64,000 nucleotides of DNA from Auanema rhodensis (taxonomy: Eukaryota > Animalia > Nematoda): contig OZ059895.1 of assembly GCA_964057225.1 (NCBI GenBank), positions 16,864,001 through 16,928,000 of the forward strand. Direction: 5' to 3'. This document shows, one piece after another, positions 1,567 through 64,000 of this stretch. The notes below the pieces were generated by a model. It made no database searches, was not told the origin of the DNA, and saw only the letters and a list, made by a program, of their open reading frames with translations. The first letter of the stretch is position 1. Every line of letters begins with the position of its first letter. The position numbers and the translations under genes were made by a program.

Positions 1567-1604
<38 letters not shown>

Positions 1605-1929: not shown

Positions 1930-1975
<46 letters not shown>

Positions 1976-7839: not shown

Positions 7840-7913
7840 CAACCGTGTTCATATCAACTGCAAGCGATAAATGAATTAGTTCACGTCTAAATGACGGCAA
7901 AATCACGTGAAAT
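7840..7913 (+). promoter_or_regulatory. Dispersed CAACCG...ACGTGAAAT module, copy 1
   Basis: CAACCG 7840; AAATGAATTAGTTCACGT 7869-7886; TCACGTGAAAT 7903-7913. Confidence 0.5.
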
Positions 7914-8495: not shown

Positions 8496-8538
<43 letters not shown>

Positions 8539-9411: not shown

Positions 9412-9453
<42 letters not shown>

Positions 9454-9956
9454 ATGTAATAGTTAATTTGAAAATTTTTATAATTGAATCCACAAAATAT
9501 GTATTCAATCGTTCAAAAGTTGAGAGGAAAAGCATATAAGAGAAGAAGAGGGACTGACAAAGAGAGAGAGCTAGAGAGAGAGAAAGTTTGAATATGATGG
9601 AAAATCATCATAGCTTCTCATCTAATTTGAATATAAAGCTTAAAACTGATTAGATGATGTTGATGAAGGATGGTGAAGAGTAAGGAAAAGGACATGAAAG
9701 AGTGCATATAAGCTGAGAGAGAGAGAGAAAAAAAGAGAGAAAAGAGAGCAATGACGATGTTCTTTCGAAAATTATGTGTTAAATCAACTAGTTAGTACCA
9801 TCTGCTTATTTCGTTATAAGGTTATGTCAAATTGAAGAGATAATGAAAGATGTTGTAGAAAGAATAAAAGGACCCCCTGGCTAGATAGATGAAAAGAAAG
9901 GGCAAAAAGCATAAGAGAAAGCATGAATAGATAACAGAGAAAAGGATAGAAAGAGA

Positions 9957-10020
<64 letters not shown>

Positions 10021-13000
10021 AATGAGAAGTAGAAGAAGAACAAAAATAGCAATTTGACATCTGAATATGAATTACTGGATTAAGACGATGATGAGATAAA
10101 GAGGGAGAGCACAACGAGCAGGAGGCCAAGTCGGTCTGTCTGGTTGTACAGGAAAGTAACAAACCCCAGCTAGTCATGAAGTGAATTCAAACACAGATCA
10201 AAGAATACAAATGGATGGAGAGGGAGATGATGGCCAGAGGGGATATAGATAGATAGTTAGAACAGCCACACATACGGCTTACATAATTTGTAGCCAATAA
10301 GGAGAAGCGTGCATTAGGGTCAAAGAGGCTGAGGTGTGACTAGTTAAGGGAATACGGTAGCTTTTTCAAATGTGATGAGGCCACTACGATAGATGGGGTG
10401 AGAGAGAAAGAGAGATAGAAACAGAAAGAGCATGCTTCATGAGGAGGCAGAGACAGAGCGGCTGACGAGGGGGGGGGGGTCGAAGAAGACAACGAACACA
10501 TAAGATGAATGAGAAGCAATGGAACGTAGTGAAGTGTTGCAACATAGGTAACAAGTTAACACAGCAGAAGTAAGATGAACAATCACAACAATGATTGAAG
10601 CTTATATGCTGTATGACAGGTGTAACTCAGCAGTGCAACAGTCTGAACCTGATGGTATGAAGCAGTATGTTTTGACGGAGTTCACACACATATGCAACGC
10701 TCATACATGTATTTACTGAAAAAGACGACGAAAACTTGAACTCTGAACAAATTATCATAACTTGACCGGCGAGCTCAAAAGCAGAAGCAACAACAGTAGG
10801 ATAAATGAAAAAGGAAATGACAAAATTAGGGAGATAGAGAGAGAAATAGAGAGAGAGAGGGAGATGGCGAGCAAGGAAGAAGAAATGAGAGAATGAGCAA
10901 GTAGAAAGAAACAGCTGAAGTTAGTCGCGAAGATTACTCAGATGAATAGAAATTGTATAAAAGTGGACGAAATAAGCTGCGCAAGCTAGTTTAGCTTAGT
11001 TAAGCAGATGATGAACTATGAATCAACGAATATGTATAAATGAAATAATGTGAAGTTCACGAAGGGATTCAGATTCTGATTCAGCTATTTCATGATCTAT
11101 CATGTAGAGAATGCTCATTTACTATGATTTTGAGCAGTATGAACGAACATATAGTAATCTAAACTATGCGGCATAGTTAGAAAAGGTGGAAGACGTAGCA
11201 TTTACAAATAAGGAAATGATCTTGCTTTGTGTGTATATGATAAGCTTCACAGTTTCTGAAGGATTTTCATGTTATATTCTTCGAGATGCTTTGAACTTTT
11301 GATTTTGAAGATGTCGATGACTTGAAGAAAACTATAGAATAAGAATGGAATGATGATGAAATGAGAAAAGGAATTAGGATGACGAAGTGACGGGAATCTG
11401 AAGTTGAAAGGCTAATATGGTTGATGAAGAGGCTAAAGCTACAGTGAGAGATGAGGGTGAGAAGAAGAGAAGATGTTGAAAAAGATAATGACAGAGGAAG
11501 TTAATCGTCATGAAATTTTGTGGCTCATTGTCGGCATCATCTATGATTTGTTTCGAGTCTCTGAGGCTGTCCGGCCAAAATTAGGGATGTCAAGCCTATA
11601 CAAGAGTAGACGAGAAACGAAGAAAAGAGGGTGAGAAGATGAACATGTCTAAGCTTAGCATAGCTTGAAACGGAAAAGCTTTAAGGCTCATCAGCTTCTT
11701 GTTATAATATTGAATTACTAGCGATGTGCTATATCTTCGGCGAAGCGCAGATTCTGATTAGTTATAGTCGTCAACGATGCTGATCATCATCATCATCATC
11801 ATCATCATCATGAGCATGATGAGGACAACGACCGCGGAAAGACAATGATGACGACAAGAACAGGGGTATGAACTTCTAGTACGACGATGATGACGACAGT
11901 CTGAAGCTTTTGAAAATGATGAGCAGCTATATGAGACGATGTACTCAATCCGTTGAGATCACATCAAGTTTGAGACAGTAATAGCAATGTTCTAACGATG
12001 TTGAAGCTTTGAAACAAATAGCTAAGACAAGATAAAAGATGAGCAGTGATAAGAAGCTTATAAGACTAGATCAAGAAGAACACCGAAAATCATTTTTATG
12101 TTTTTCTCGTCATGGCACAGCCAGCAATAGATAGACTGGCACTTGGTGTAGTATGTGGATAAAACAGTAAAGGTCATGAAGATGAAGAGATGGAAATCGG
12201 CCGGAAGCATCTTGTAAACAGATCATGATATCAGAGAAACTAGCTGAGCTTGTTGAACGAACTATTGTAAAGAACAACATGTTGATTTACAGATCTGAAG
12301 GTACTTTGATGTCAAGATGGGGTAAGCGATTGCTTCGGCTTTAATCAGTTGCAGCTGAATATATCCGATAAGCTGAGAAACAACTTGTAAGCTGTGTAAG
12401 TGTAGAAATTAGGTAAAACATAGTAACAAAGAAAAGAAAAGAAAAAGAAGAGAAGGTGAGAATAGGGAGGAGGTGATGTCTGGTAGGATTCATCGGCCAT
12501 GAAAAGGGAAAATCGAGGACTTTCCGTTCCAACTGCTAGGTATCGAAGGCGACAAAAGACGGTGAATGAGGAAGAGGGATGGAGAAGGGAGGTTGATGCA
12601 ATGCAGAATGAAAACCAAAGAGAGAGAAAGAGGTAAAGAAAGAGAGAAACAGTATGCAAATAGAAGAGGAAGAGAGAAAAAGAGAAAAAGACATACATAT
12701 GAGGGTTAATAAATTAGAAAGGGCGTGAATTATCCTATGTATGTGCGGTAGAATCTAAGCTCTGCTCCGGTTAGAAATGAATTCAACCGGTCTCACGCTC
12801 AATTTCACATCTGCAGGCTGTGGCTTGAATGCTATTAACAGGGGCGAAAGACAAGAAGATAGATAGATATATAGAAACATATATAGAGAGAGACATAGAG
12901 AGAAACAGAAAAGTGGAGAATCAGGTAGAAGATGATGTTGAGATGAGCACGACATGAAAGAACAGTGATTCACTGAAAACAAGGCAAAAGCTAGATTGTA

Positions 13001-13148
13001 TTCAGAGAATACATGTATGATCCGAGTAAGTGACGGACAAAGTCAAAAAGAATTTATCCGAATAGATGTTGATGAATATTCAGTTCGAATACACCTTACT
13101 TGCAATAGCTTGAAAATAACTTGGCTAATCATTTCAAATTTTTCTTTT

Positions 13149-13185
<37 letters not shown>

Positions 13186-13706
13186 ATAAGCTAGTAGTGC
13201 TCAAGTGAATAACCTGAAGCAGATGATGATGATGATGAGGATGATGATGCAATTATCTCATAGTAGATTTGAAGATGCTTCAACTGACTTGTTGAAATTC
13301 AGATAATCGGGAATGAGAAAATGCATTTTTCATCATAATCAAGTAAATGAAGATGTGTAGTCGTAGATAAATGGAAAGAAACGATAGAATTTGAATTTTA
13401 GAAGAGAAGGAAGAGGAAAAATAGAGGTGAAGGGGTAGAGAGAGAAGAAGCTGAACAAATTGTTAAATTTAGCGACTTGACACACTTGAATAAGTATCGA
13501 ACATTAAGGTTCACATGAATAAAACTAATGAGAAAAAAATTGAAGCTGGAAGATTACGAGAGAAACAAGACAAAAGTGAGAGAGAGAGAGAGAGAAAGAA
13601 AGAGAGAGGGAGAGAGAGAGAAAAAGAGAGAGAGGGAGGGAGGGAGAGAGAGAGAGAGAGAATTTAGAGATAGAGAGAAGATGAAAAGGGAGATACGTAC
13701 CGAGCA

Positions 13707-13783
13707 CAACCGTTCCCTATAAGAAAAAAGAAAAATGAAAGAAAATTGAAAATGAATTTTTCACGTAAAACGTCATCACGTGG
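13707..13783 (+). promoter_or_regulatory. Dispersed CAACCG...ACGT-cluster module, copy 2
   Basis: CAACCG 13707; AAATGAATTTTTCACGTAAAACGTCATCACGTGG ending at 13783. Confidence 0.5.
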
Positions 13784-16737
13784 TCTAATTTGAATATAAA
13801 ATGAAGTAAATACCATATAGTTAATATGGTATAAACAACGATATTTAATTTGAACAATCAGAGCGAATCAACAAGAAGCTAAAGTATGAAACATGTATGG
13901 AATGAAATAGGAAACAGGATGTTAGGCTGGTTACAAAGCTCAATGCTCATGCACTTGAGTTCGATCATCAATACAGCAAAAGTGAAAAATGCTTAAAAAT
14001 TCTAATTGGATATGAAAACTACACAAAATTGGTGATTCATATGCGCAAGCTCAAGTGCTACTTCTTGCAGCAGTACCAGCAGCATCGTCGTCAGTAGTAG
14101 ATGTAACAGCACGTTCAAACATAGAGAGAACAATGAATAGAATACCGAAAATGTAGCTGTTGAAACACAAATTGATAGAATATGAGCTATGCTTCATGAG
14201 CTAAACGTTGAACAAGACCGCCTTCGCAGCTATCTGATCTGAAAACCAGAAGCAGCACAATCTGTCTTATATAGGCTTTCTACAACAGCTCAAATCAGCT
14301 CGTAAGAATTCCTGAGAATTTCATGATTCCAGCTCTAATTCAGATGATATTATCTAATCCGCTATATAATTTTTGATACAGGATGCAACAAAAGATACAG
14401 AGAGAGAGAGGGGGGGGGGCGAGAGAGAGAGAGAGAGAGAGAAAGTAGAGGAAGAGAGAGAAGGTGAAGTGAAAAAAGAGAGAAAAAGAGAGCTGGAGCT
14501 AACTATTCTGAACTGTTTCGGCAAGCCATCGCATCAAAGAAATGTGAAAAAAAATCCTAAAATCTCTATCTATTCACATATATATAACATATAGATAATA
14601 CCCAGCTAAGTACTAAGCTATTATATAATATTAATATATATATATATATTTATATATTAATATATATTTTTTTGAAATATATTTATTAGTTAAAAAGACA
14701 AATGTTTTTATCTTTCTTTCTTTCTTTTTTTCCTCTCATTTTTTATTTGAAAATCTGCCACCCTACACAGATTTGCATTTTGACTTGCATGCTCAGCCCA
14801 GCAAGTCATTCTCTTTCTAATCGGCATTATCATCATAAGCTATTAATTTGAAGAAAACTTCTCATTTCCATGAACTATTCATGTAGTTGGAATGATTTTT
14901 AGCCATATCATCATAGATATCTTTTCTATATTTCATATAAATTAATTTTTTTTAACATAATTCCTAACTTTGAACAAGCTTTAAGCTGTATTTCTTGGTA
15001 TTCAATTTCTTAAAACGTGTTCCTCGTTTAAGCATATATCTTACATATAATATATGTACGTATAGTTAAAGATGATGTCAAAACTTGGATGATAAGTTGA
15101 AATAAAATTTTTTTACACACAGGAAAGAGAGAATAGAAGGATAGACAGAGACATTCATTCTCTTCTTCATCGTCTTTCATGTTTGATCTTTCAATATACA
15201 ATCATCTAAGATATAAACTGCTTATGATTTTTAAAAATTAATTTATTATGATTATATAGATTATATAGTATATTATGTTATGATGGAATTATATTGTGGT
15301 TTGAAAAGAGAGAGAGAGAGAGATAGAGAGAGAAAGGGAGATGTGAACTTGTGTACGTTCACGTATGTTATGATCCGGACTATACTCAATATCCACATCA
15401 TCATTAACGCAAATACGTCGTTAAGAATGAGATGTAATACGTAAGTTAGTTCATACAAGTTCATTCTTTAGTGATAATACCAGAATATGCTCTTACATAC
15501 ATGCAGCTTTATCGATTCAGCTTCTTGTTTAATCTTCAAACTTTCATAAAATTTCTTGGATAACGATGAGATGAAGAAGATGAAGACGAAGAATGATGAG
15601 TAGAAGGACAACAACTACTCACGAAAACCTAAATGAGTTGAGGGTCAAGCTTTCGAGTAAAATCTCATCATCAATCAGTTCTCATCATCAAACGACTTCG
15701 TCGTAGTTTCCACATTGCTTGGGTGCTCGGTTCTGCCGGCGGCCTTGCTCGCCATCATCATCAGCAGCAGCAGTAGCATCAGCAACATCCAACATATAAA
15801 CACATTCTCATCATTGTGTTTACATGTTATTGTTGTTGTTTCATTAATGATAACAGATGCTGAGATGATGAGACCACTACATGTGTCTGAACAGACACAT
15901 AGGCACAAGGTGAAAAAGATTTCAAACGAAGACTATTTGGACTATCCTCATTCAGCTTGTATCAATCTATGATTCAAGTTTAATATTCATTAGAAACTTA
16001 ATTAATCAATTAAAGAATAACTAGAAGACGAATTGTCTGTCCTTCGATATGATGAACGTTGATGTCTCAGACATATGGCTCAAAATTGAATGTTGAGAAG
16101 TGAAATGCTTAAATTGGCCAAGAACATAGCAGGTTCATAATAGAAAAGATAGTCGAGAGTTTTGAAAGGGATAGAGAAGGGTAGGTGTAGGGTGATAGTG
16201 TATGAATAAGATGAAACAGAGCTTCTTCTTCAGAAGGAGAAGCAACTTTATGAACTTCATCGAAAGTATCAACATCTTCTTTTTCTTTGTTTAACAACGA
16301 ATTACCTACAAAAGTGGAATGGAAATGAAAACGTTTATGAGTAACAACCTCATTCATAGTTCAATCTGAGCATTTTCATCACAAAATTCTATTAAACTAT
16401 TTCAGTCTGAAGGGATTTGTTGAGTGTAATTTAAGGATAATACTACAATCTTTCTAAAAATCTTCTTGTTATATCATCATACGATATGACTGTGTCTAGT
16501 ATGTGAGTACAAGATAGAAGAAGGCAGAGTTAGATGAGAATAGGTTAATACTCCTACAAGTTCAAGAAAATTCGATGAAAAACGGACTAACTATACGATA
16601 TAGTTCATGTAATTTCTTTTCAAAAATAGTATGTAACATAATGTTATTTCTTGGTCTCACTATATAATTTTCTTGCAAATTCTAACAAAATATTCATCGC
16701 TTAACTAGAGAGCATCAACCTCTTCCTTCTCTCTTTA

Positions 16738-39356: not shown

Positions 39357-39809
39357 ACTCTTTCTCCCTCTTTCCCTCGTAACATATGTATTCAACCTTT
39401 TCATCCAATTACGATAAGATGTAAACCTTGAAGTATATGAAAAGAAAAGAAAAAACTGAACGATTTATTTGAAAATTCATGAATTACCAACGACAGCTAC
39501 CTTACTCCGTTCAAGAAAATTTAGTTTGATTACCTTTATGTATGAATAGACTTCATTTCCATTTGAATCAAATGAGTCTAATGACGAATCTCTTAGAGAA
39601 ATGTTTCTTCTCTTATTATTTTCTTAAAGCTTAAACATCATAAAAGACACATTATCATCATCAGTGCAACCGCACTGCGTGCTTATTAATTTTGAAATGG
39701 CGGGTGATTTACATTTCAAAATTAATTTTAATTAGAATATACGTGGGTGATCTTAAACATGTAGGTTAAAGATTAAATTGTAGTAATCATATTAGATAGT
39801 TCAATTCCA

Positions 39810-41097
39810 ATGTATGACACTTATCCCTGCCGTTTGTCAACTGATCAAACTGATCAATTTTTGCCTTCATTCAAGGATACAGAAGTCTCATTAAACAATG
39901 TTGAAACATTGAGTTATACTTCGATTCTGAGATCAAACTCAGAAGGATCACGAACTGCACGTACATATGTTTCCTGTCCTGAATGCTACCGTATGCTATC
40001 TTGTCGGAATGTCATGTACCGTCATCTACGCATAGTTCATCGATGGCCGGAGACTTCTGTCCAACATTTGATCAGATGGTTTCGTAAAACCTCTGAATGT
40101 TCATTGCAGCTTTATGCATTCAAATCTGAAAATTATAATAGAACCAATGAAATAGTCACCAAATCAAGGAAGAACTTCAGTACAGTTGATGAACCCTTAT
40201 CCAGAAGATTATCATCAGCGGAAACGTACAATTCTCATTTGAAACTGGTACATTTTGATTATTTTATGAATTTAATGATTCAGTTGACAGTATTTTAGAA
40301 ATTCGTTCCTTGCCCTGTACCCGGATGTACATCTATACTTGGATTTCATGAAGCATTAGCTAATCATTGCGAATTGCTTCATCAAGAAGTTGGAGCAGCT
40401 GGTCAGCCTCAAGACTATTCTATCAAAAAAGTTTTTCATACTTCATTCAATGATTTTGAGGTATTTCATATGCTGCATGCTCATATACACATCTTCATTT
40501 TAGAATTGGCTCGTCGCTCTACAACGTGAGACTGGCAGTTGCTTCATAAAGCGGACAACCAGACACAATCAAGATATCATGTATAGATGCCATCGAACTG
40601 GTCATCCACCAACAAAACGGACAAACAGTATAGTACATCGACGAGGCCACCCAACACGCAAAGTCCAGCTACACTGCAGCGCCTTCATACGTTTGCGTCA
40701 ACTGCACAACGGCTTATATCAGACGAGTTACTGTTCTGGACACATTGTGCACGACTTGGATATATCCAAGACATGGCTAAACAAAGCTGACAAGGAATAT
40801 TTACGAAATCTGCTGTTACAACATCGAAATTACGAAACGGTGATTGAGACAATTCGTTCGGAACGTGGATCAGATGAGCGCATATACTGGACGACACGTA
40901 ACGATTTACAAAACTTAAGTTTGTCATTAAAGTTTGAAGAGCATGCTTCTCCTCAAATATCATCATATGAATCTATATTAAGTAGTAAAACAATAGTAAA
41001 CAAATGCTTATATAATATATATTTAGATCATAGTTATGCTAAAATAGATTCAAATGCTATTATATATCCAAATGGAACTACTTTATCAATGTTATAA
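39810..41097 (+). CDS. C2H2 zinc finger / MULE-transposase N-terminal-like DNA-binding protein, left copy (~397 aa; exons 39810-40247, 40299-40460, 40504-41097)
   Basis: GT-AG introns of 51 and 43 nt keep the frame. Motifs: CPEC-x12-HLRIVH; CPVPGC-x12-HCELLH; F..W...YRCHRTG...C.AFI...YCSGH..H (WRKY/GCM1/FAR1-like); helical region ending R.YWTTRNDLQN. No DDE domain. The start codon and a possible 42-45 nt in-frame intron near 40982-41026 are uncertain. Confidence 0.8.
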
Positions 41098-41737
41098 TCA
41101 AATATATTATATACATGTTAGCAAGTATAAATGTATTTTTTCTTTTCTTTTTTCGTTGTTTCCTTATTTGTTTTTTTGAAGAAATTATATTCTAACGAGT
41201 TGTTGTACCATTTCATGAATGTTTTCATGGTAAATATTAATTTTTTTTGCATCTGAAGATCATATATTTATTTTTTTTTTCTAAAAAAATTATTAAAAAT
41301 AAATAATAAATGGTTTTAAATTACTACTACTACGATTATTTTATTCTATCTATACCTCTTTTTTTTTGTTTAATATGTTTTTCAGCTCAACTTAACTAAA
41401 AAAAATAGAATACAAATGAAAAAAAAATTGAAAGAAAGACAGTAATCATCCTTTACATTGTAATTAAAATATTTTTAAGTTGACATCTTTTTCTCTTTTT
41501 TTTCTTTAAAAAAACTTGTTGAACAGCTCTAATTTAGAGATTGTAGATGATAATTAGCTGGCTTTAACAAAATTTAAAATTTCAGAATATATAATATATG
41601 ATTTGTTTTTTTTTCAGCTGAAAATGTAAATGAACTCTTTATATATTATGATTTTTTTCCTTTTTTTTGAAACAAAATGATTTTCAAGGTTTAAATCAGG
41701 CGGTAAAATAAGCTGAAGCGGTAGTACTGAACGGATA

Positions 41738-41781
<44 letters not shown>
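41738..41781 (+). repeat. (ATG)n trinucleotide repeat (mirror (CAT)n at 43249-43292)
   Basis: Same repeat length in both arms (14 Met in both ORF translations). Confidence 0.95.
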
Positions 41782-41786
41782 AGTAG

Positions 41787-41796
41787 TATATAAAAG
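41787..41796 (+). promoter_or_regulatory. TATA-box-like TATATAAAAG pointing into the spacer (mirror 43234-43243 on minus strand)
   Basis: Matches the TATAAAAG consensus and is followed by GC-richer sequence. Confidence 0.35.
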
Positions 41797-42103
41797 GTTG
41801 ACGCTGGGACAGCTCGGGGACCGTTCAGCGAATTTCATAGTCTGGATAGCGATTATTTCTTCGAGTACAATTTTCCTTCTGTTATTGCCTTCTTGGACAA
41901 GCGCTTCCCAACCATTCGATTTTTTTTTATTTTTAGACACAAATTTGAAGATTCTTAAGGTCGAGCTTTTACAAACCGTTGACGTCTCCGAATAATACTT
42001 CCGATAGTTCTCAGATCATCTTTGACCTTAATTTTGTTCTAATATTCCTTGTGTTCTTTGAAACTTCATCATCAAGACTTCAATCTGAAAAAAAAACAGA
42101 AAA

Positions 42104-42775
42104 TTGAGATTTCATTTAAATTATTCAGTAAGAAGAGAATATAAAAATTCATTCATAAAAAAAAAGGAGGAACTAGACTTCGACGAGCTCGTCGATCTTG
42201 AAGAGGCATTGCTAGTCCCCATTCCCCAGTCTACCGTACTTCATCCTACCGTACCCGCCAAAAGGACCGAACCGTTTAAAAACCGGGCCTTCAAAACTAC
42301 CGTAACCGCCAGACCGACCGTAAACGATGAGCCTACAGTACCTGCCAAAAACAAACAAGAAGAATTAGTCCCATACGGAAAACCACCGTCAAGTACATCG
42401 ATCAAGCTTGAAGAGATCTGTACGAAGATTCAGAAGATGGACAAGAAGCTGAACCTGATTATCGACATCCTCATTCGAAACGAGAGGAAGTACTGGAGAA
42501 AAATGGCCGAAGAAGAAGACAAGAAAAAATGTAAGCTGTGCGAGAGCAATCATGGGACCGATTTCTGCACTAACTACACCTCGATAGCTCAACGATTACA
42601 TAGAGCTCAAGAAATTAATCTATGTATGAGGTGATTAAAGAAGGACCACCGCACAGCCGATTGTAGAAATCCTACAATATGCCACCACTGTAACTCAAGA
42701 GTGTGGGCACATCCGATCTATCTAGAGAAGAGATGGAAGAAAGTAATAGAAAGGGGGGGGGGACAATACTTTTGA
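42104..42775 (+). pseudogene. BEL/Pao-type LTR-retrotransposon Gag-like remnant with three zinc knuckles
   Basis: CKLCESNHGTDFC...LCMR*LKKDHRTADC...CHHCNSRVWAH. The frame continues past TGA 42632-42634 for 46 codons to TGA 42773-42775. Upstream are a Pro/Thr-rich and a coiled-coil-like segment. No pol and no clear start. Confidence 0.7.
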
Positions 42776-42918
42776 AAATAAATCTTTTTCGCTTTAAACA
42801 GATTTTTTAATTTTTTTGACATAACACGCTATGCCACGTTTCAATTGACACACCTAATATTTTTTTTTAAACATTGACATAAATATCACAAATTGTATAA
42901 AAAGGGCACATATGCATA

Positions 42919-43236
42919 CTAATCGATGAGACTTTTTCTGGCCTGCAAGCATTCATAGGTTCTACTATTCATATCCCACATTGCATCGTTTACTCTACTA
43001 CGAATGGTTCGAAACTCTTCAATCATATGATCAACTGCCTTCCTATCGATAGCCCTCCCTGCATAAAGACGAAGAATTTCTTCAAATTTGTGTCTAAAAA
43101 TAAAAAAAAATCGAATGGTTGGGAAGCGCTTGTCCAAGAAGGCAATAACAGAAGGAAAATTGTACTCGAAGAAATAATCGCTATCCAGACTATGAAATTC
43201 GCTGAACGGTCCCCGAGCTGTCCCAGCGTCAACCTT
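42919..43236 (-). other. Unassigned 105-codon open frame spanning the right arm/spacer junction
   Basis: KVDAGTARGPFSEFHSLD...RHKFEEILRLYAGRAIDRKAVDHMIEEFRTIRSRVNDAMWDMNSR...LID*. No 5' ATG and no recognised domain. Confidence 0.3.
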
Positions 43237-43248
43237 TTATATACTACT

Positions 43249-43292
<44 letters not shown>

Positions 43293-45365
43293 TATCCGTT
43301 CAGTACTACCGCTTCAGCTTATTTTACCGCCTGATTTAAACCTTGAAAATCATTTTGTTTCAAAAAAAAGGAAAAAAATCATAATATATAAAGAGTTCAT
43401 TTACATTTTCAGCTGAAAAAAAAACAAATCATATATTATATATTCTGAAATTTTAAATTTTGTTAAAGCCAGCTAATTATCATCTACAATCTCTAAATTA
43501 GAGCTGTTCAACAAGTTTTTTTAAAGAAAAAAAAGAGAAAAAGATGTCAACTTAAAAATATTTTAATTACAATGTAAAGGATGATTACTGTCTTTCTTTC
43601 AATTTTTTTTTCATTTGTATTCTATTTTTTTTAGTTAAGTTGAGCTGAAAAACATATTAAACAAAAAAAAAGAGGTATAGATAGAATAAAATAATCGTAG
43701 TAGTAGTAATTTAAAACCATTTATTATTTATTTTTAATAATTTTTTTAGAAAAAAAAAATAAATATATGATCTTCAGATGCAAAAAAAATTAATATTTAC
43801 CATGAAAACATTCATGAAATGGTACAACAACTCGTTAGAATATAATTTCTTCAAAAAAACAAATAAGGAAACAACGAAAAAAGAAAAGAAAAAATACATT
43901 TATACTTGCTAACATGTATATAATATATTTGATTATAACATTGATAAAGTAGTTCCATTTGGATATATAATAGCATTTGAATCTATTTTAGCATAACTAT
44001 GATCTAAATATATATTATATAAGCATTTGTTTACTATTGTTTTACTACTTAATATAGATTCATATGATGATATTTGAGGAGAAGCATGCTCTTCAAACTT
44101 TAATGACAAACTTAAGTTTTGTAAATCGTTACGTGTCGTCCAGTATATGCGCTCATCTGATCCACGTTCCGAACGAATTGTCTCAATCACCGTTTCGTAA
44201 TTTCGATGTTGTAACAGCAGATTTCGTAAATATTCCTTGTCAGCTTTGTTTAGCCATGTCTTGGATATATCCAAGTCGTGCACAATGTGTCCAGAACAGT
44301 AACTCGTCTGATATAAGCCGTTGTGCAGTTGACGCAAACGTATGAAGGCGCTGCAGTGTAGCTGGACTTTGCGTGTTGGGTGGCCTCGTCGATGTACTAT
44401 ACTGTTTGTCCGTTTTGTTGGTGGATGACCAGTTCGATGGCATCTATACATGATATCTTGATTGTGTCTGGTTGTCCGCTTTATGAAGCAACTGCCAGTC
44501 TCACGTTGTAGAGCGACGAGCCAATTCTAAAATGAAGATGTGTATATGAGCATGCAGCATATGAAATACCTCAAAATCATTGAATGAAGTATGAAAAACT
44601 TTTTTGATAGAATAGTCTTGAGGCTGACCAGCTGCTCCAACTTCTTGATGAAGCAATTCGCAATGATTAGCTAATGCTTCATGAAATCCAAGTATAGATG
44701 TACATCCGGGTACAGGGCAAGGAACGAATTTCTAAAATACTGTCAACTGAATCATTAAATTCATAAAATAATCAAAATGTACCAGTTTCAAATGAGAATT
44801 GTACGTTTCCGCTGATGATAATCTTCTGGATAAGGGTTCATCAACTGTACTGAAGTTCTTCCTTGATTTGGTGACTATTTCATTGGTTCTATTATAATTT
44901 TCAGATTTGAATGCATAAAGCTGCAATGAACATTCAGAGGTTTTACGAAACCATCTGATCAAATGTTGGACAGAAGTCTCCGGCCATCGATGAACTATGC
45001 GTAGATGACGGTACATGACATTCCGACAAGATAGCATACGGTAGCATTCAGGACAGGAAACATATGTACGTGCAGTTCGTGATCCTTCTGAGTTTGATCT
45101 CAGAATCGAAGTATAACTCAATGTTTCAACATTGTTTAATGAGACTTCTGTATCCTTGAATGAAGGCAAAAATTGATCAGTTTGATCAGTTGACAAACGG
45201 CAGGGATAAGTGTCATACATTGGAATTGAACTATCTAATATGATTACTACAATTTAATCTTTAACCTACATGTTTAAGATCACCCACGTATATTCTAATT
45301 AAAATTAATTTTGAAATGTAAATCACCCGCCATTTCAAAATTAATAAGCACGCAGTGCGGTTGCA
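43079..45365 (-). repeat. Right arm (2287 bp) of long inverted repeat
   Basis: Reverse complement of 39665-41951; ends ...CGCAGTGCGGTTGCA. Confidence 0.97.
43933..45220 (-). CDS. C2H2 zinc finger / MULE N-terminal-like protein, right copy (exons 45220-44783, 44731-44570, 44526-43933)
   Basis: Exact mirror of 39810-41097; co-oriented with fce-1 and 270 nt downstream of it. Confidence 0.8.
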
Positions 45366-45368
45366 TCA

Positions 45369-45374
45369 TTTATT
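45369..45374 (-). terminator. Likely poly(A) signal AATAAA of fce-1
   Basis: Plus-strand TTTATT, ~117 nt after the fce-1 stop and 3 nt outside the palindrome edge. Confidence 0.55.
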
Positions 45375-45490
45375 GAAAAAAAAGATAAGATGAACAGAAC
45401 AGAACAGTATTATTCAATAAATGAGATAATAATAATAATAATAATACTGAACCGACGAAACAAAGAAAGCACGCAGAAGTTAATTTTTAA

Positions 45491-47338
45491 CTATTCAGGC
45501 TTATGCTCCTTAATGGCTCGGATTCTCTCAATAATTGGTGGATGAGAGTGGTTGAAAGCCGAATATAGAGAGTCGTCGATTGGCATAGAGAGGTTATCCT
45601 TTAAATAATTTTAAATATTTCTATTGTACAGGTATATAGAAAAGCTAACCTTGCTAAGCTTTTTAAGGGCGCTGATTAGCTCGCTTCCGAATCCAAGATC
45701 AACAGCGTATTTATCGGCTTGGAATTCACATCTACGAGAATGAATATTCATCAAAAATCCGTCAATCTAGAACAGATGGGTTGCTTCATGACTTAAGAAT
45801 CAAATTTTACTTCATTGTAAGGAGCCATAACGTATTGGAAGACAAGAATGAAACCAATAATCACAGGGGTATTGTGGAATCCAAAGCACTAAAAAGAAAT
45901 ATTTTAGAATCTAACAGAAATGCTAATGTATTACTTCATAAAGTGCAGTCCACTTGTAGAAGTAGCTGAAGGCGAAGAACATGAAAAAGATGTTGATTTC
46001 AGTAATGACCAAGTTAATGACTGTGTGAGAAAGAGCCCAATGTCCAAGCTCATGTCCAAGAACGGCAACAACTTCTTTATTAGACATTCCACGAGCCTTA
46101 AAATATTTGAAGGTAACAGACAAAGGTTCCGATAAATTTAGGTAGAAACCTTTTCCTTTTCATCCTCAGGTTCTTGCAATTCAGCACATTCTTTCATGAC
46201 CTTCTCTTTCTCTTCTCCGCTCAACAGGGTGTCATAGAGAACAATACGTTTGTTTTTCCAGAATCCATACATATAAGCATTACTGTGAGCAGAACGCTTA
46301 GAACCTTAAAAATTTAATAATTGTATAAAAGAGAAAACTTCAAGTGAACCATGAACAACATATAGCTTAGTCAACGGGTATTGAACAGAGGCAGCCAGGT
46401 TTTCAATAGCAGTCTGCAAAAAGATATTTTCTTTTAGCTTGAAAGGAAGAGTTAATATACCTTCAATGGACCATCAGGCAATGGAATGTACTTGTCAAAG
46501 AGAGGAGCAATGAAAGCTGGATAGATTGTCATGAGAACGAAGATGATGATAGAAACGAATATCCAAGTGTATACAAAGAAGTAATCTCCTATTAATAGAA
46601 GAAATTAGTTTCAAAACTCAGAATATGCAGAATAGTACCTCCAGAAAGAACAATCCATTCTAAACCAAAGACGATAGGAGCAGTCATAGCAGATGAAACG
46701 ATGAATTTCTTGATCTGAAAACGAATAGTTGGTAATAAATGGCTAAGAATATATTCAATTAACCATGTCAGCGAAGTAAAATCCAATAGTTTGCTTGTTA
46801 AATCCATGCTTTTGCTCAATTACAAAGGTATCATAAAGTGACCAAGGTAAATCAACGACGGTGGAAATTAAACTTGCAAGAATAGTAAAACAAACGGACT
46901 AAAATAGTAATATGATAAACATCAGCTGCTAGTTCATGAGTACTCACTTGGAATGGCATATTGTCACAGAAATACCAAAGTGCAGGTAACCATCCATTAA
47001 GTAAAACAGCCTAAAAGGATAAAAAATTATCCAAAAAAATTCGTTGTCATCCTTACAGTGTTAAAGAGTTGATTGAAAATTTGGTGGGCGAATCCAAATC
47101 TATGAGTATCTAATTTGTAGTTACGAGCTTTAGTATAAACCTGAAATTCAATAGAAAATGATTGTATGCGTCAGGAAGTAAACAAGCACACCTCTTCGGT
47201 TATCAAGTCAGCTACTTCTTTTGGACGAGTAGCATTTCGTTCATGAACCTTATACTGACGCCATCCAAGATACAGATCCCATAAGAAAACAGACCAATTG
47301 CCTAATACAATAACGAAAAAGAGAGTGGCTGGTTCCAT
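45491..47338 (-). CDS. fce-1: CAAX prenyl protease 1 (ZMPSTE24/STE24, peptidase M48), 12 exons, 438 aa
   Basis: Exons 47338-47192, 47140-47057, 47010-46948, 46898-46764, 46714-46639, 46588-46461, 46413-46350, 46304-46150, 46096-45935, 45888-45811, 45766-45650, 45598-45491 splice in frame. Motifs: [39 protein letters not shown] (HExxH), EFQAD, HSHPP. Confidence 0.96.
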
Positions 47339-55970: not shown

Positions 55971-58900
55971 TGTCAGCATAAACAGTATCAATATCTGAAG
56001 CATTAGCATAGTTAGAAAGTAAGCTCTTTTATTGGTATTGGAGCGCATAAAGTTATCCATAGAGCAGACATAAAGAATATAAAATGGTAAAATTAAATAA
56101 ATATTTTATATCAATTGAAGGCCAATTTTCCCATCAACTTTCATTGTATAAATATTATTCAATTTACAATTGTTTGCGGTAAACATTATATTGGAATTCG
56201 AAGGAAATTGAGCAAAAATAAACTCTAATTCTAATGCAAAATGAAATTGTAAAATTAAATAGATTATTTATGTTTTATCAATTCATAATATATACTATAT
56301 CCCTGTTTCGAGATAAATTTAGGTTGTTTCCTACAATACATCCATAAAAGTTCTCATTTAATATAATAATGAGGCGCTAAGTATGACTCCGCATAGCTGA
56401 ATACAACCGAGCTGTGAGTTTGCATGTTTAAAATGGAATCATGTTTGAAATTAATCTGCTGCAAATGGAACAATAACATAATGTTTGCTAATTCAGCATT
56501 TTAATTCAGCATTCCCCAGGAAAACATTGATGTCAAAATTCTAGATTTTTTTAGTTTTAGTCAGTATTTTGTATAATCGATGTCATTTGAAGATGCTTTC
56601 ATCTTTCAGCACATGGCATACTCTTCAACGTTCAAGTCATTGAATTTGATCCCTGATCACGTGTCTTTTTCCTTATTTAGTCATAATCTTAAGCACGTAT
56701 TTTATCCGAAACAATGTGAATGACGAGTAAGGCGTGTAAGGAAAAATCAATTCGTTTGAAGTAGACGGACGTCTTCGGGTAAGAAGAAAGAAGCAAGATG
56801 AGAGTAAAGACGAGTAGCGAGTGAATCTAATAACCTGGACTTGCAATTTCTGAATTGAGTCTGCGCCCCAAAGCAGAATCTGGACAAAGCACCTAATCTA
56901 AGCAATTCTTGTGTTTGAGCTTTTATAGTACGAGGAAAATGGCAATGAATTTACCTTTTATAGAACCCTAAGCACAAAACGGACTTCTTTTCAAAGCTTA
57001 ATCTGTTCGACTTTTCCTGTTTTAAAATTCGTATGAAAGTACGTTTTGAGCTAAAATAAGATTTGTGAGCGTTTAGCGACTTCTAATATTGGATTAGGAG
57101 ATGAAACGTTTTTTAGTTTTTGAACAAAAAAAAATAAAGAGAAAAGCTAAAATAAAGGAAATGAATAAAGCATGACTTGTTGTTTTCTTCTTAAATTACA
57201 ACAAAAAATAAAGGTTTTCTATATTTAGAGGAGATGGTACTGAAAGTAGAGTTGCAGCACCCAAGCAAACATTTAATATTATTTTCTTTACATGTATTCA
57301 CGTCCCTTTCTTCGATTTTTTACCAATTATCCAAGAGAAAACAGAGCTCTAATCAGTGCTTTGGACGAAACAATCATGACAACATTTCTAAAAAATCTTC
57401 TTTTATTTTATTTATTTATTTTAAATTGGAAAAAGTTCCATATTAGGACAGGAATTCCCTCGGATATGCTCATGTATCACAAACACTACACAAGTGAAGT
57501 CCAATAACATAAACAACTATGACTACATAGAAGCAACCAATTCACTAAGATTTTCTGAGATTTTAAAACATCCATTGGTTCCCCCCCACTTCGTTTTCAT
57601 CTCCCTACATCTAACCTCAATATACTAACTCTGAACCATCTCTGCATCTTTGAAATTAGTCTTAAAGCTGACGTCAGTAATTGCAGAATATTCTCAATTG
57701 GACGGATAACACCAGTTGTACTAGTCTACCTGAAACGTTAAAATCACAGAAAATCTAAGAAGTAACATGATTGTAATTATTCGAAGAAAAAAATCTTCGT
57801 CTTGAGGCTTGTGCATATGCTTGTTGTGTTCTAATAAGGAATAGGATCTATATTTCCTCACACAGCTTGTAAAGTTTTTCGAAAAAAAAAAACAATTAAA
57901 ATTGCTCACATTGAAGATTATGAAAAATAAAAAAATTAATAGAAAACAAACAAATTGTCTAAACTATTCATCAATTCGTCAGTACCATAATCTATTCCAT
58001 CCAAACTTTATGAAAACAAAACTTTTAAAATACGCGCATATTTAAATTTTATATTTTTACTTTTTCTCTTCAATCTACTAAGTTATAACACATTTTTGTG
58101 TATCGAAAATCGCTTTGTTTCCTAAAATATAAACAACTGAATGTCTTTATTCAATGCTTCATCTCTGCTTCTCTCGACTTCAATCAACTGTCAGGGGAAA
58201 ATAGAAGATTTACGTCTCATTATGAAATTCATATAATTTTTGACAAATCACCTTCTGAATAAAGTTGAAACATTTGAATGATTTCAGCTTCAAACATGCG
58301 TTCAAGCTTGAATCCGTCATCCTACACATCGATACTATGTTGTTGCTCATTATTGTTGGCGTCTGTTTTCTTCATTTGAATTTAAAGTTTGCATCGAAGA
58401 AACAGCATGAAGAAGAATGTTTCAATAACTAGAAAAAAGGATATTTTGCTCATCTTATCCATCAACAGTATTGAAAAGGGAAAAATTTGTTTCTCCCTCC
58501 CTCCCTTTCTTCTCTTTCTCTTTCTCTTTCGCTCTCCCTCTCTCTATCCCTCCCTTTATCTTTCACTCTCTCTCTCTTTCTATTTTCCATCTATATCTCC
58601 CCATTCCTACAAGATATATTTTTGTATGAAAGTTCAATGAAGGCAAAGCACGAGAACCGAGCATTGCATTCAACACACAATTCCAGCAATTAATTCTATT
58701 GAATATAGCATTGTTTTGCTAGGAGGTCCAGAACATTTGCCTATTTGCTCTCCTTCTTCAATTGCAATTTCATATCCAATTTGTGGTCAGGTTAGATGAG
58801 TCCTGGAGCGCCGTGTTAGGATAGTAGCCGAAGGTCAGCCTCATCTCCTCTCTATCTCTTGCATCCAGGCTCATCCGTGCTCTCATCTCATTCTCTTTCC

Positions 58901-61896
58901 ATTCTCTTCATCTTGACAACGCAATTGCATTCAATTTGCTCAAGTTCACGTTTGTTAAGCTAATGAATTCGATGGACACCGAAGACTACACACAACTTTC
59001 TTGTCCTTCCATTTGTCTTTGACTTCTGAAACCTCAAACACATTGACGTCATACCACGTATTTTCACAAATGTACACATCCACATCCGCTTAGATGAGTT
59101 AAATAGAAATGGCGAGGAATTTTTTTTTTGAATATTTTCTATTTTCTCAGCTTCTTCTCATATTATCTTATGAAAAACACTGACGACATCTGGAAGAAGT
59201 GTCAACAGAATGTGGCACTGAGCTCTTTCTATTGTCGTCAATTTTTCCAGATCGCATCGCAACAAGATACTGTTTCAAGCCGACTCTACAAGTATATTAG
59301 GAAAGTCACAGCACTAACGAAGAGAGATCATCAGTAAAAGTCCTTCTATACATATACTCTCTTCCAGATACTGCGGAGGTCGAGGGATGACACGACGGCA
59401 CCAAAAGCAGCTCCAAAATGGGGTAACATCGGAAAACAGGCCTCTCTTCTGGTCGGATTTTCGGATTTAGTCATTTTTTTAGCTTGCCTAACTAATTCTT
59501 TTCGAGCAATTCCCTCTTTCTTTATTTTACCTTCAATGGCATGTGCTCAGTCTGTAAGTTAATTATAGCCGATGAAGGCACTTGAAGCTCTTGTGAAAAT
59601 TCTGTTGGTCTTCCCAAATATAGCACCACGTTAGAAGCAGTATTTCCATCTCTCCGCCCTCGATCCCTTTTTGCTTTTTCTCTCTATACCACAATCTAAC
59701 TCTCATCTCTAATATCCTTTTACTCTCTATACATCTCTTCTATTTCTCTGTCTCTCTCTCTCTCTTTTTGTCTCTCTCTCTCTCATTCACTTCCCCTTTT
59801 CTCCTTTGAATGAATATTAAACCGACTCTCTATAGAAAACTTCATCTCCCTCGTAGTTTCAAGCGGTCATGTCGACATCTTCTTAAGGTTTTCAATCGTT
59901 TTTCTAATGTTTTAGTGGGGTCACCACTACATGCCGTCTTCCTAACGTAATGTCTCCTAATAAGCTTTGTTCGTTGCCTGACACATCTCTCTGCTCTTAA
60001 GACAATTTCCTCAATTCTGTCAAGCTTTTGGATTCGCTCAAGTCAACGAATGAAGCGTTAAACTTGAGCATCGCTTTAATTGATTAGAAAACAAATTATT
60101 TTTTCACTTTGCCTCAACACATACATATTCGAAATTTATTAACCTATTTATTTCTTCTTTCTTGTTTTCCTCTCGTCTTCTTTCTTCTTTTCAAGGAAAA
60201 TTCTTCCCTCGTTTTCCTCTTTCGCTTCCTCTTACCATCATGGCTCCTCTCTATCCCTGCTGCTGTTGCTACTGCTGTTGCTCTTACTGCTCCATCTCAT
60301 CTTATCTCGTCAATTTATATGAAATTATGTATTTTTTCTTTTTTTAGTTTACTCCCTTATACACAAAAATACTTTATCGTATTCAACTAGCTTAAATCAT
60401 GTAGATGAAGCTAATCTCCAGTATAATGCTATATCAAAACATGTATGAATTCTGATTAATTTGAAGCTCATTAAGCCAACTTTGAAACTTCATTTTATTA
60501 TCCAAGCTAATGCTGCAATACTAATAATGCTTGTCTCAGTGTCTTTGCAACAAGTATTAAGTGTATTTCCATCTGATTCAGGTGACGATGACGTAATGTG
60601 TCAATTGTTTCCAACAAATGGCCATAAATGGTCAGTTATTGCTCAGTATGCTTCTCACTCTTTCACCTTCTCTCTTACTCTCTTTCTCTCTTTTTCCCTC
60701 TTTCCCTTTTTCGTTTCACTTTTATGTCTTCTAACACGACTTCTCCTTCTTCAACATTATATTGCTGTCAGCACTATAACGTCAATCTTCAAGTTAATCT
60801 GACATAAAGAAAGGTACAACGAAATTGTAAACGATTGAAGAAAGTAAAACAATAAAAGTGTTTCAAAACCAGAGAAAAAGATAAATTTATAAGAAAGATA
60901 AGAAGAGAGAGAGAGAGAGAGAGAAGGTTGGATAGGGTGAGAGGGAGTGAAGTAGGAGTTCCAAAAAAAGTTATAGTGTAGTCAACCAGAAAAAAAGGAA
61001 GGAAAATATAATTTTTACTTGCTTATAAACACAAGATTTTTTTCATTTTCTCTCTCAATTTCAACTTCAATTTTGTTTTTTTTTCAACTTTCTTCTGACA
61101 ATTTTTCATGGCTGATGGATATAATCAGGCTCATATGTTTGATTGTTCTTCAGAAACTTAAAATATTCTCTTTTTATCTATTTGAATATACATATCTTTA
61201 AAATTGATTTGAAAAGAAAACATTCCACCAGATGATGATGAATTGTTTATTTCTTATTAAAATATATTGATTATTATATAGTTATAGATGAGATATATAT
61301 AAAGATTGCGTCATGTTTTTGTTGTAATATAAGTTCTTCATCGTCTGTCAGTAGCTTTGTGACTTCAACAGCTTGTCATCTGGCTCCAGCATTGCAGATA
61401 GCCAGATACCTATCTCTTTCGTTCAATCATTTTCATGTCATTTACTTCTCACTTCTCCATCCACCTTACGTTTGAAATTACTCCCCCCCCCCTACCCCTC
61501 TCTCTCTCTATTTCTCTCTATTTCTCTCTACCTCTACAACACACATTAGACACTATCTGCTTAAATGGTAATATCTGATAATGCTTCAGCTTTTACAAGA
61601 TACTCTCGGACTATCTGAATATTCTCACAGTTGCTGCTTCATTCAGCTTATAGCATCGGAAGACTTGATGCATGAGATGCTTGATCTGTCACCCTCGTTT
61701 CCTGCTCCACAAGCCATCTCTATCACCCTTTCTTATTGCCAGCCCCCCTCCCTTTCTCTCCCTTTTCCTATCTCTTTGTCTGTTCTATAAAAGTATCGGT
61801 TCTACCTTTTCCACTCGTAGGCGACTTTTTTTGTTCTTTCTACCCTTTAAATACCTCTTCTACTACGTATTCACTCAATTTTCCTACTCCTTCATT

Positions 61897-61900
<4 letters not shown>

Positions 61901-61972
<72 letters not shown>
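61901..61972 (+). repeat. (CT)n microsatellite, ~72 bp
   Basis: Read directly. Confidence 0.95.
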
Positions 61973-61975
<3 letters not shown>

Positions 61976-62994
61976 CTCCTCTCTTCGTTTTTTCTATTAC
62001 TTTCTATCCCTTATATTTCTTTTCAAACCTATGACTTGTGTTCTTCAAAAGCGTACCAAATCCGGGTGGGAGCTCAAAAATCTGTCTTTTCACGCCATCG
62101 TAGTCCTATCTGTTTTTCTTATTATTCGTATAGTTTGCTGTTGTGTAGCTTTGGCACAATTTAGTCGTGTAAGCTGTTCTACTATATCTTTTTCTCATAC
62201 ACTCCTAGACAAGTGAGTTGAATAAAAGAAAAAAAAAGTCAATTTCTTCACATTTCTACGTCTATCCTACTTATGTATATTCTATATATGAAAGTAGGTG
62301 ATGTGTTATTATTTTTCAATTATATTATTATTGTTTATTATTTATTTATTTATTTCAATTTATAGTTAATATAAAATATTTTTAACTATATACACTACAA
62401 TCTGTCTATATATTCCTTTAAACATTTTCTAAATTAGTCATTAGTTCATTCAATCATAACATCAAGTAACATATCTGTATGTATAGCTTAAAGCCCAAAA
62501 ATGACCTTAGCACTAGCACATACTTACACATAAGCTTGTACTCTTCTATTCAAGTTTTCAAACATCAACAACCTTTTTCTTTTTAAAATTTATGCTTAAA
62601 TTCTCACATTCATAGGTCAGAAAATGTTTGTAGTATTTTGTAATAATCAATTCATATTTTTTACAGTAATTTTCAACAAATTCTTTTTTCTTTCACAACT
62701 TTTTCAAGTTCTTTCATCAAAAAAGTTTGTTATTACCAGACATAACAACCAAAGTTGAAATGAAAGTATGCGTTAACAGCTTTGCTGCCGATCTATGCTG
62801 TATGCTCTACTTCGTTGCTTTCAACAAAACTCACAAGATTGAGCCCGTGCAGCAACAGAAATCGGATTTGACGACAGTACACAGTCAATCTAATTGCGTT
62901 TGTCGGCGATTATTCTTCGTTTTATCATTCTTTTCTTAACTCTTTTTTCTTTTGAATCTTTTTTTTTTCGCGTGTAAAGGAATTATTTGAATTT

Positions 62995-63083
62995 ATTTCA
63001 CGTCATTTCACGTGATATATGATGTACAATTGAATAGTTGTCATTCTTTCATTTTATTCTTAAAATGATATGATGAGCGGTTG
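62995..63083 (-). promoter_or_regulatory. Dispersed module, copy 6
   Basis: Minus strand reads CAACCG...ATCACGTGAAATGACGTGAAAT. Confidence 0.5.
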
Positions 63084-64000
63084 TGTTTTCTATTTTTAAT
63101 TAATTTTATAATCACGTTATCATATTTTCTTCTTTTTTCATAGAACATGCTTGTGTTACTTCTCAATTCCATTTCAACATATATTCTTCAAAGTAAATCA
63201 TGAATATAGTTGTAATATGCATTCTCAAGTATCAGAATGAATTTCCAAAAATCATCATCAGGTAATAGAAATATAGAAATAGTTTAGAGTGTATAAAACA
63301 TAATCCTAACTATTACTGAAAGCTGATAGATGGTTAGGGATAGACTGAGAAGCCAAGATCACAATCAAGGTGTCAGATTGGTACACCAACCTCGATCTCA
63401 ATAGTGTTGAACATCATAGTTTGTAAGAAGGAGCAGTGTAATATGGATTCATGATGCAAAACTTTAAAAATCATTGTTATAGCTCAGTTAGTTTGTCTAT
63501 AATTAGGTTGCCACGCATCTCTTCCTTCTACAACTTTGCAACATCGGCTTCTCATCAGCATCCAACAACTAACCTGATAGTTTCATTAACGAATATTTTG
63601 TATTAGCAGCCACTAATTATAAATCGGATCCATGCAATCTCCAAACTTAAGATATACTATTATGTCCGTATCTCATATTAGTTCTTCTGAATTTTTGATC
63701 CAAAGTTTCTCTTTCTCTCTCTTTCATTATTACTCCACAAGGGGTGTCAGATAACATTGGAGTTGAGAAAGGATGTCTTCAGCAACTTCCTGTCACATAG
63801 CACTAACTCCCCCCTTTCTTTCTCTCTTTCCGTCGCCTTTCTCTCTCTCTCTTCTTGAACATCTTCTCACTTTTTTTCTTCATAATCTTTTTATATTTCA
63901 TAGTGATAATTTGTCCGTTCATTGATTTTCCTATACTTGATGCTTTCATGGAAATTGCAAAAACTTTGTGACATCATTAGTTATCATTCATGTAACTGCT

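Follow-up and report, generated by a model that had tools for sequence, protein, structure and literature searches.

A perfect gene-bearing palindrome of a nematode chromosome, probably a very young inverted segmental duplication

Within the window analysed here, a stretch of 64,000 nt, two arms of identical sequence and opposite orientation each carry the same zinc-finger gene and enclose a short single-copy spacer. In our view, to which we assign a probability of about 70%, the palindrome is real and goes back to a very recent inverted segmental duplication, confined to one locus, in a chromosome of a rhabditid-type nematode. A very recent inverted duplication was one of several explanations offered by the first-pass annotation, and it is favoured by the single locus, the sharp ends and an inner boundary that cuts through a conserved open reading frame (ORF). 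On the best reading, the palindrome is a young gene duplicate of a common sort, and inverted copies like it are known to make up most of the young and close duplicates of C. elegans. It would illustrate, in clean natural form, how a gene becomes duplicated in inverted orientation in one step, the mode behind most young duplicates of rhabditid nematodes. What sets it apart is only the relic ORF severed at one breakpoint, from which the direction of the event can be deduced. A conserved MULE-derived DNA-binding gene would now be present in twice its former number of copies, and the duplication could exist as a presence/absence polymorphism; a new kind of mobile element is not revealed by it.

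Geometry and content of the palindrome

A repeat search returned the two arms as an inverted pair of 2287 nt each, 100% complementary and 1127 nt apart, and a script comparison gave exact reverse complements (Table 1). Thus, the arm coordinates, the lack of a net indel and the spacer length given by the first-pass annotation were all reproduced. The same holds for its statement that the homopolymers it had checked and the (ATG)14 tract match: all homopolymers of at least 7 bases (13 of 13) are identical between the arms, as is the tract. No N occurs between 38 and 47 kb. The palindrome is the sole repeat of at least 150 nt within the window and sits approximately 16.9 Mb into a chromosome-scale contig, with unique flanks on both sides. 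Each flank matches once in the assembly, and no alternative haplotig with an empty site was found there. The left flank ends with ...CATCATCAG and the right flank begins with TCATTTATT...; a target-site duplication was looked for at the outer ends, but the flanks share no direct repeat, in line with the earlier remark that a convincing one is missing. Past either arm end there is no decayed extension of the palindrome, the similarity being no better than that of shuffled sequence. In the arms, TRF found no FB-type subrepeats and the trinucleotide tract as the only tandem repeat. A search of the whole window against Rfam yielded no RNA gene.

Table 1. Positions of the features in and next to the palindrome (numbering of the window)
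Feature	Position	Strand	Remarks
Left arm	39665..41951	+	probable derived inverted copy; exact reverse complement of right arm
Novel junctions of left arm	39664/39665 and 41951/41952		
Left gene copy	39810..41097	+	exons 39810-40247, 40299-40460, 40504-41097
(ATG/GAT)n microsatellite, 14-16 units	41734..41781	+	TRF; identical mirror at 43249-43296
34-nt motif	41782..41815	+	mirror at 43215-43248; identical to C8:12471617-12471650
Truncated relic ORF duplicate, left arm	41794..41958	+	cut at 41951; stop two codons past arm end
Spacer	41952..43078	.	asymmetric, single-copy mosaic
Gag-like retroelement fragment with Cys/His boxes	42112..42717	+	87% identity to C4:11968618-11969224
3'-terminal ~145 nt of a multi-copy dispersed repeat	42720..42863	+	at least 17 genome copies; left side truncated
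Relic ORF, 105 codons	42922..43236	-	spans right arm/spacer boundary
Right arm	43079..45365	-	probable parental copy; contiguous with spacer's right edge and right flank
Right gene copy	43933..45220	-	exons mirror those of left copy
Exon of Ste24-like CAAX protease gene (Peptidase_M48, HExxH)	45923..46123	-	stop near 45491; outside palindrome

Read from left to right, the spacer consists of 160 nt of unique sequence, the gag-like fragment, the end of the dispersed repeat and the 3' part of the relic ORF. The retroelement Gag remnant announced for this interval corresponds to this gag-like fragment. It is truncated at both ends, its frame is broken by a stop at 42632-42634, and its Cys/His boxes are visible in the translation; neither this fragment nor its homologue on C4 gave a match in Pfam. 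The C4 homologue is flanked by a Pao-type integrase on one side and by an RT/Peptidase_A17 fragment on the other. Judged from these similarities, the spacer appears to be ancestral intergenic transposon debris with a gag-like part of Pao type. That a class II-derived gene encloses a class I fragment, regarded before as an unusual composite, would then be a coincidence of a duplication landing in intergenic DNA rich in such debris and not the mark of a composite element.

The relic ORF and the direction of the event

In its full form, the relic ORF is open across 43078/43079. It resembles a nematode family of 175–221 aa, but only over the C-terminal ~90 aa of the latter, and no Pfam domain was found for this family. 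The alignments with its paralogues on C8 and C5 cover residues 10–101 of 105, hence extend across the right-arm boundary, whereas the alignment of the left copy with the paralogues ends at the arm edge (41951-41952). Since the relic ORF is whole only on the right side, right arm and spacer are to be seen as the original and the left arm as the copy. For the inner boundary, these alignments show the right arm to be ancestral and the left end to be a breakpoint; for the outer boundary, we infer the same direction by parsimony. A Peptidase_C5-like ORF adjoins one of the paralogues. A Maverick/Polinton origin of the family was considered and rejected, the wider region on C8 holding only an RT-bearing ORF.

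Two adjacent inverted copies at one locus with a single-copy spacer between them are what a one-step inverted segmental duplication should leave behind. One copy contiguous with the ancestral sequence and the other one at novel junctions, likewise to be expected, were found for the inner boundary only. The ancestral order would have been left flank, spacer, a segment X (43079-45365) and right flank. On its minus strand, X would have carried the complete host zinc-finger gene and, after it, codons 1–53 of the relic ORF, which continued from X into the present spacer. A reverse-complement copy of X would then have become inserted between 39664 and 41952. Most likely, the left edge of the spacer suffered a break or a stalled fork by which a 3' end became exposed. 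This end may have folded back on its own strand over approximately 1.1 kb, copying 2287 nt before it was joined, thus extended, to the left flank without microhomology. Such an event would result in two identical convergent genes, a truncated second relic ORF and an unchanged ancestral spacer. The microhomology expected for fold-back priming seems to be imperfect here. A 5-nt inverted match noticed post hoc, AAGAA at 43072-43076 versus TTCTT at 41952-41956, is displaced from the junction by 2 nt; at the outer junction, inspection revealed no inverted microhomology.

Fold-back inverted duplications with a single-copy spacer have been documented in humans (Hermetz et al. 2014, PMC3907307). They share with the palindrome the inverted copy and the spacer in normal copy number; they also have short inverted sequences at the spacer boundary, to which the 5-nt match noted above may correspond. 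However, the human cases are large, terminal and formed via a dicentric intermediate, whereas the palindrome has arms of 2.3 kb, is interstitial, requires a second join to the left flank and possesses an inverted microhomology that is imperfect. Closer to it are the young adjacent inverted gene duplicates of C. elegans, described by Katju and Lynch (2003, as cited in PMC3194840) and by Ezawa et al. (2011, PMC3194840); more than 80% of the youngest and closest duplicate pairs of this species are inverted (PMC3194840). As in these, the copies are of kilobase scale, nearly identical, neighbouring and in opposite orientation, include partial copies of neighbouring features and point to an origin in one step instead of a tandem duplication followed by inversion. 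The differences are that another nematode is concerned, its species being absent from the protein databases searched, that the arms are fully identical and that the polarity can be read from the truncated relic ORF.

Alternative explanations for the identity of the arms

Human Y palindromes are kept identical by arm-to-arm gene conversion, and frequent conversion of this kind might also have preserved an older palindrome here. Under such conditions, arms that are 100% identical, hypermutable tracts included, are equally expected. Gene conversion is documented between adjacent inverted Caenorhabditis paralogues (PMC3966223), and for C. elegans it has been suggested that close inverted duplicates are homogenised preferentially (PMC3194840). 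However, the arm ends are sharp and lack a decayed extension, and conversion would need to reach every part of the 2287 nt, even non-coding AT-rich stretches and the remains of a dead ORF. Furthermore, the relic ORF family forms another palindrome in the same genome, on C8, the arms of which have drifted to 95% identity. Thus, inverted pairs in this genome do diverge. The orthologue of the arm gene in Auanema sp. JU1783 consists of two nearly identical proteins with the consecutive accessions CAI4228510.1 and CAI4228511.1 from one contig, which could be two gene copies; but they differ by a single 16-aa internal gap and, on sequence grounds, look like two splice models of one gene. Taken together, we consider an old palindrome maintained by conversion as unlikely. 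The palindrome resembles the hsp-16 inverted repeat of C. elegans, which likewise bears genes in a rhabditid nematode, with an arm length of ~2 kb around a unique spacer measuring a few hundred to a thousand bases; for the hsp-16 arms, however, homogenisation by conversion is assumed, and expression of both copies is established.

It is rather improbable that the palindrome is a working locus acting through hairpin RNA and RNAi, or an old, conserved palindrome that is kept by conversion and shared with the Auanema orthologue. In the former case, a transcript starting at the left gene copy and extending across the spacer into the right arm would contain a perfect stem of 2.3 kb, which could feed the nematode RNAi machinery and silence or tune the encoded MULE-derived zinc-finger gene. 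In the latter, the two near-identical Auanema proteins would be two palindromic copies.

A perfect palindrome is also what fold-back chimeras produce, and a fold-back or chimeric read might have been built into the consensus during library preparation or assembly. The location inside a chromosome-scale contig, the unique flanks and the asymmetric spacer of 1.1 kb make such an artefact very unlikely; a chimera from a missed adapter or from template and complement would have almost no spacer. In addition, the left inner junction joins sequences without shared overlap, therefore neither a false overlap join nor the mixed orientations of a heterozygous inversion would explain it.

The duplicated gene and the mobile-element reading

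Each arm contains one complete gene of three exons, and the two copies are identical and convergent. The two convergent, intact and spliced genes noted in the first-pass annotation are borne out by introns of 51 and 43 bp, both of the GT..AG type, and by exons 1–3 being colinear with the Auanema protein CAI4228511.1 (343 aa), at 41%, 69% and 50% identity, respectively. The right copy lies approximately 270 bp beyond the end of the Peptidase_M48 reading frame, downstream of its stop codon and on the same strand; its left counterpart retains only 145 bp of upstream sequence within the arm. The product combines two C2H2 fingers with a DNA-binding domain of the FAR1/MULE type. A word-index protein search with exon 3 gave no match, and Pfam returned only sub-threshold matches for the ORFs of arm and spacer; for FAR1, exon 3 alone reached 14.2 bits against a cut-off of 28.1, the domain being split by an intron. 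An exhaustive search of representative proteins, by comparison, found 176 homologues at E ≤ 0.001. Among the best 73 of these 176, 13 carry MULE, eight the ZSWIM1-3 RNaseH-like domain and two FAR1, and the homology covers the N-terminal region of the MULE or ZSWIM1/3 proteins. The Atlas neighbours are FAR1 and ZSWIM3 (0.94). Proteins from Auanema and from hookworms (strongylids) are among the relatives. The ligands C195, C223, H244 and H247 of a Cys-Cys-His-His set are nearly invariant in the alignment of the homologues, and exon 3 carries the same residues at the aligned positions. A transposase core, MULE or DDE, was not matched in any ORF of arm or spacer in Pfam, nor does the orthologue-like 343-aa Auanema protein have such a domain. 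Therefore, the label of a transposase-derived zinc-finger gene is appropriate in a deep evolutionary sense only: from its homologues, the arm gene appears to be a conserved gene of the host, with a DNA-binding domain of the MULE/FAR1 type.

The domain type is that of the N-terminus of MULE transposases, and the layout superficially resembles very long terminal inverted repeats (TIRs). Hence the proposal of a foldback or Mutator-like transposon, whose long TIRs encode their own DNA-binding protein and which captured a gag fragment. In the 181-Mb genome, however, the arm DNA is restricted to its two copies, both larger exons have none beyond the palindrome, and the 25-nt arm terminus, with up to 3 mismatches allowed, was found only at the two arm ends; a single locus with no related elements was the outcome that the first-pass annotation itself had named as speaking against mobility. 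Long inverted arms and the encoded FAR1/MULE-type domain are shared with foldback/MULE transposons. Against such an origin stand the single locus, the lack of a target-site duplication, of a transposase core and of subrepeats, and arm ends that represent breakpoints, the inner "TIR" edge cutting through a conserved ORF that belongs to a different family and extends to one side only. As the gene, moreover, has orthologue-like relatives in Auanema and strongylids and behaves as a host gene, a transposon origin is hardly credible.

The exons of the arm gene having been searched singly, the Auanema orthologue served as a proxy for folding and for full-length comparison. A PDB profile search returned generic C2H2 fingers only, and Foldseek with the predicted model of the orthologue (mean pLDDT 79.6) found no significant match in the PDB. 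When tested for a WRKY-GCM1 fold, the model matched the DNA-binding domain of AFT2 weakly, with a Foldseek probability of 0.66 and a VIA Z of 5.6 (102 of 120 residues aligned, rmsd 5.0).

Structure of the palindrome and its spacer

The repeat search returned the inverted arms exactly as the first-pass annotation had described them: 2287 nt each, 100% complementary and 1127 nt apart. In a scripted comparison the arms were strict reverse complements, and the region contained no N. The palindrome is the sole repeat of at least 150 nt within the 64-kb window. Past both arm ends the two sides resemble each other no more than shuffled sequences do, so the palindrome ends are sharp, without a decayed extension. 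Both flanks are single-copy in the genome (a 181-Mb assembly of 112 contigs, in which the window is C3:16864001-16928000). The protein matches given below mark the genome as that of a nematode, and nothing in it resembled human sequence.

Features of the palindrome (window coordinates; C4 is another contig of the Auanema rhodensis assembly)
Feature	Coordinates	Strand	Remarks
Left arm	39665-41951	+	
Arm gene, left copy	exons 39810-40247, 40299-40460, 40504-41097	+	GT..AG introns of 51 and 43 bp
Spacer, part 1	41952-42111		unique
Spacer, part 2, gag-like	42112-42717		87% identity to C4:11968618-11969224
Spacer, part 3	42720-42863		3' end of a dispersed repeat with at least 17 copies; left side truncated
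Spacer, part 4	remainder		unique; contains tail of relic ORF
Relic ORF	42922-43236	-	105 codons, open; begins in right arm, 53 codons into spacer
Right arm	43079-45365	-	

The C4 homologue of the gag-like part is flanked by a Pao-type integrase and an RT/Peptidase_A17 fragment. In the spacer itself the gag-like frame is truncated and interrupted by a stop. Pfam does not recognise the fragment; the earlier label of a Gag remnant therefore rests on this context and on the visible Cys/His boxes.

The gene within the arms

The exons of the arm gene were searched singly and unjoined. Exons 1 and 2 each contain one C2H2 finger. For exon 3 a word-index protein search gave no matches, and an exhaustive search of representatives gave 176 proteins at E <= 0.001, led by CAI4228510.1/CAI4228511.1 of Auanema sp. 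JU1783 (E 8e-35, 53% identity) and followed by proteins annotated as 'zinc finger, C2H2 type' from Ancylostoma and Nippostrongylus. Exons 1, 2 and 3 are colinear with residues 42-119, 115-166 and 168-337 of the 343-aa Auanema protein (identities of 41%, 69% and 50%), from which it follows that the gene is complete in each arm. Among the 73 best of the 176 homologues, a MULE transposase domain was found in 13, a ZSWIM1-3 RNaseH-like domain in eight and FAR1 in two, and the neighbours of the arm-gene domain in the Atlas are the FAR1 and ZSWIM3 clusters. A C..C..H..H set is nearly invariant across the homologue alignment and is retained in the window gene. A model of the Auanema protein, used as a proxy for the window protein (mean pLDDT 79.6), gives only a weak match to the WRKY-GCM1-type DNA-binding domain of AFT2. 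The DNA-binding domain is thus of the type that MULE transposases carry N-terminally, and the protein, which lacks a catalytic core, behaves like a conserved host gene. Paralogues of either large exon were not found elsewhere in the genome.

A Peptidase_M48 (Ste24-like) gene on the same strand precedes the right copy, which begins about 270 bp 3' of its stop codon (interval 45220-45500), and an AATAAA poly(A) signal lies at the edge of the right arm. Same-strand spacing of about 270 bp is typical of nematode operons. As a speculation, the two genes would fit such an operon, in which case the left copy, with only 145 bp of upstream sequence of its own, may be promoterless.

Polarity, age and origin of the probable duplication

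The relic ORF corresponds to the C-terminal approximately 90 aa of a protein family 175-221 aa long, with further members on contigs C8 and C5; no Pfam domain was found in this family. The left-arm counterpart of the relic ORF meets a stop two codons beyond the arm end. The C8 and C5 paralogues cover residues 10-101 of the right-hand ORF, unbroken over 43078/43079, and match the left-hand copy only up to 41951-41952. Hence, before the event the spacer continued unbroken into the right arm, which makes the left arm the copy. This polarity, together with the sharp ends, favours a very recent inverted duplication, one of the origins proposed at first pass, and we regard a young inverted segmental duplication with the right arm as parent as the most likely explanation (probability roughly 0.7). 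The proposed route starts with a break or a stalled fork where the spacer now has its left edge. The 3' end would then have invaded the strand it belongs to some 1.1 kb away, copied 2287 nt and been joined bluntly to the left flank, leaving two identical convergent genes and a truncated relic. At the outer novel junction (39664|39665) no microhomology was seen. At the inner one, the spacer opens with TTCTT (41952-41956), and the reverse complement of these five bases, AAGAA, occurs at 43072-43076, two bases short of the boundary of the parental arm; the match was spotted post hoc. That boundary itself falls within a 13-nt near-palindrome. These sequences agree only imperfectly with fold-back priming.

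There are no differences between the arms in 2287 nt, and the match of homopolymers and of the (ATG)14 tract noted earlier extends to 13 homopolymers of 7-10 nt. At an assumed nematode substitution rate of about 2e-9 per site per generation, in line with C. elegans estimates, a first substitution would be expected after about 1e5 generations; the identity of the hypermutable tracts suggests a shorter time. A possible but less likely alternative is an older palindrome with arms kept identical by gene conversion. However, an internal gap of 16 aa is the sole difference between the two Auanema accessions, which resemble two splice models of a single gene. Moreover, C8 bears a second palindrome (about 9091180-9093769), with two convergent relic-family ORFs of 219 and 221 aa and a 127-nt spacer; its arms measure at least 1232 nt, may reach past the end of the examined locus and are just 95% complementary. 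Thus, inverted pairs in this genome are not all held identical.

An assembly artefact is unlikely, since the contig around the palindrome is of chromosome scale, a long, asymmetric spacer separates the arms, and the sequences that meet at the left inner junction do not overlap; neither a false overlap join nor mixed orientations of a heterozygous inversion can have produced that junction. The proposed foldback or Mutator-like element with coding terminal repeats is rejected, because arm DNA has no copies elsewhere in the genome except a 34-nt island, the 25-nt arm terminus (at most three mismatches) occurs genome-wide at the two arm ends only, the flanks are unique and show no target-site duplication, the arms hold no subrepeats besides the trinucleotide tract, and the inner boundary cuts another ORF.

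Comparable cases and further observations

In C. elegans, more than 80% of the duplicates that are youngest and physically closest are inverted pairs, as stated in PMC3194840 with reference to Katju and Lynch 2003. A gene-bearing inverted repeat of 3.8 kb with a 416-bp centre forms the hsp-16 locus (PMC3966223), and human fold-back inverted duplications have a single-copy spacer with short inverted sequences at its edge (PMC3907307). The palindrome adds one more case, of modest interest, to a known kind.

The relic-ORF family is patchily distributed: its best match outside the genome is in C. remanei (73% identity, whereas the arm gene reaches 53% with its best match, in Auanema), and the next best are in C. 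nigoni, C. brenneri and Auanema sp. JU1783. Such a pattern might point to a mobile gene or to one that moves horizontally. The 34-nt stretch at 41782-41815, present in both arms, has an identical counterpart on C8 (within about 12471300-12473100). The C8 site is immediately adjacent to a truncated 28S rRNA gene (Rfam: 5.8S and the 5' part of 28S), and some 200 bp downstream of it come an adenovirus-protease-like ORF (Peptidase_C5, E 0.002) and a relic-ORF paralogue; the stretch may be the terminus of an element that inserted into rDNA. Two inverted copies of the 140-nt dispersed repeat seen in the spacer, at C8:6006170-6006304 and 6008526-6008661, about 2.2 kb apart on C8, share at least 60 nt of identical flank on both sides, which suggests another inverted duplication. 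Within the window, GC skew is mostly +0.23 to +0.34 over 1-14 kb (only +0.09 at 6-8 kb) and of opposite sign, -0.17 to -0.30, over 58-64 kb; the AT skews of 1-14000 and 58000-64000 are likewise strong and opposite, and the middle is rich in (CT)n/(GA)n microsatellites.
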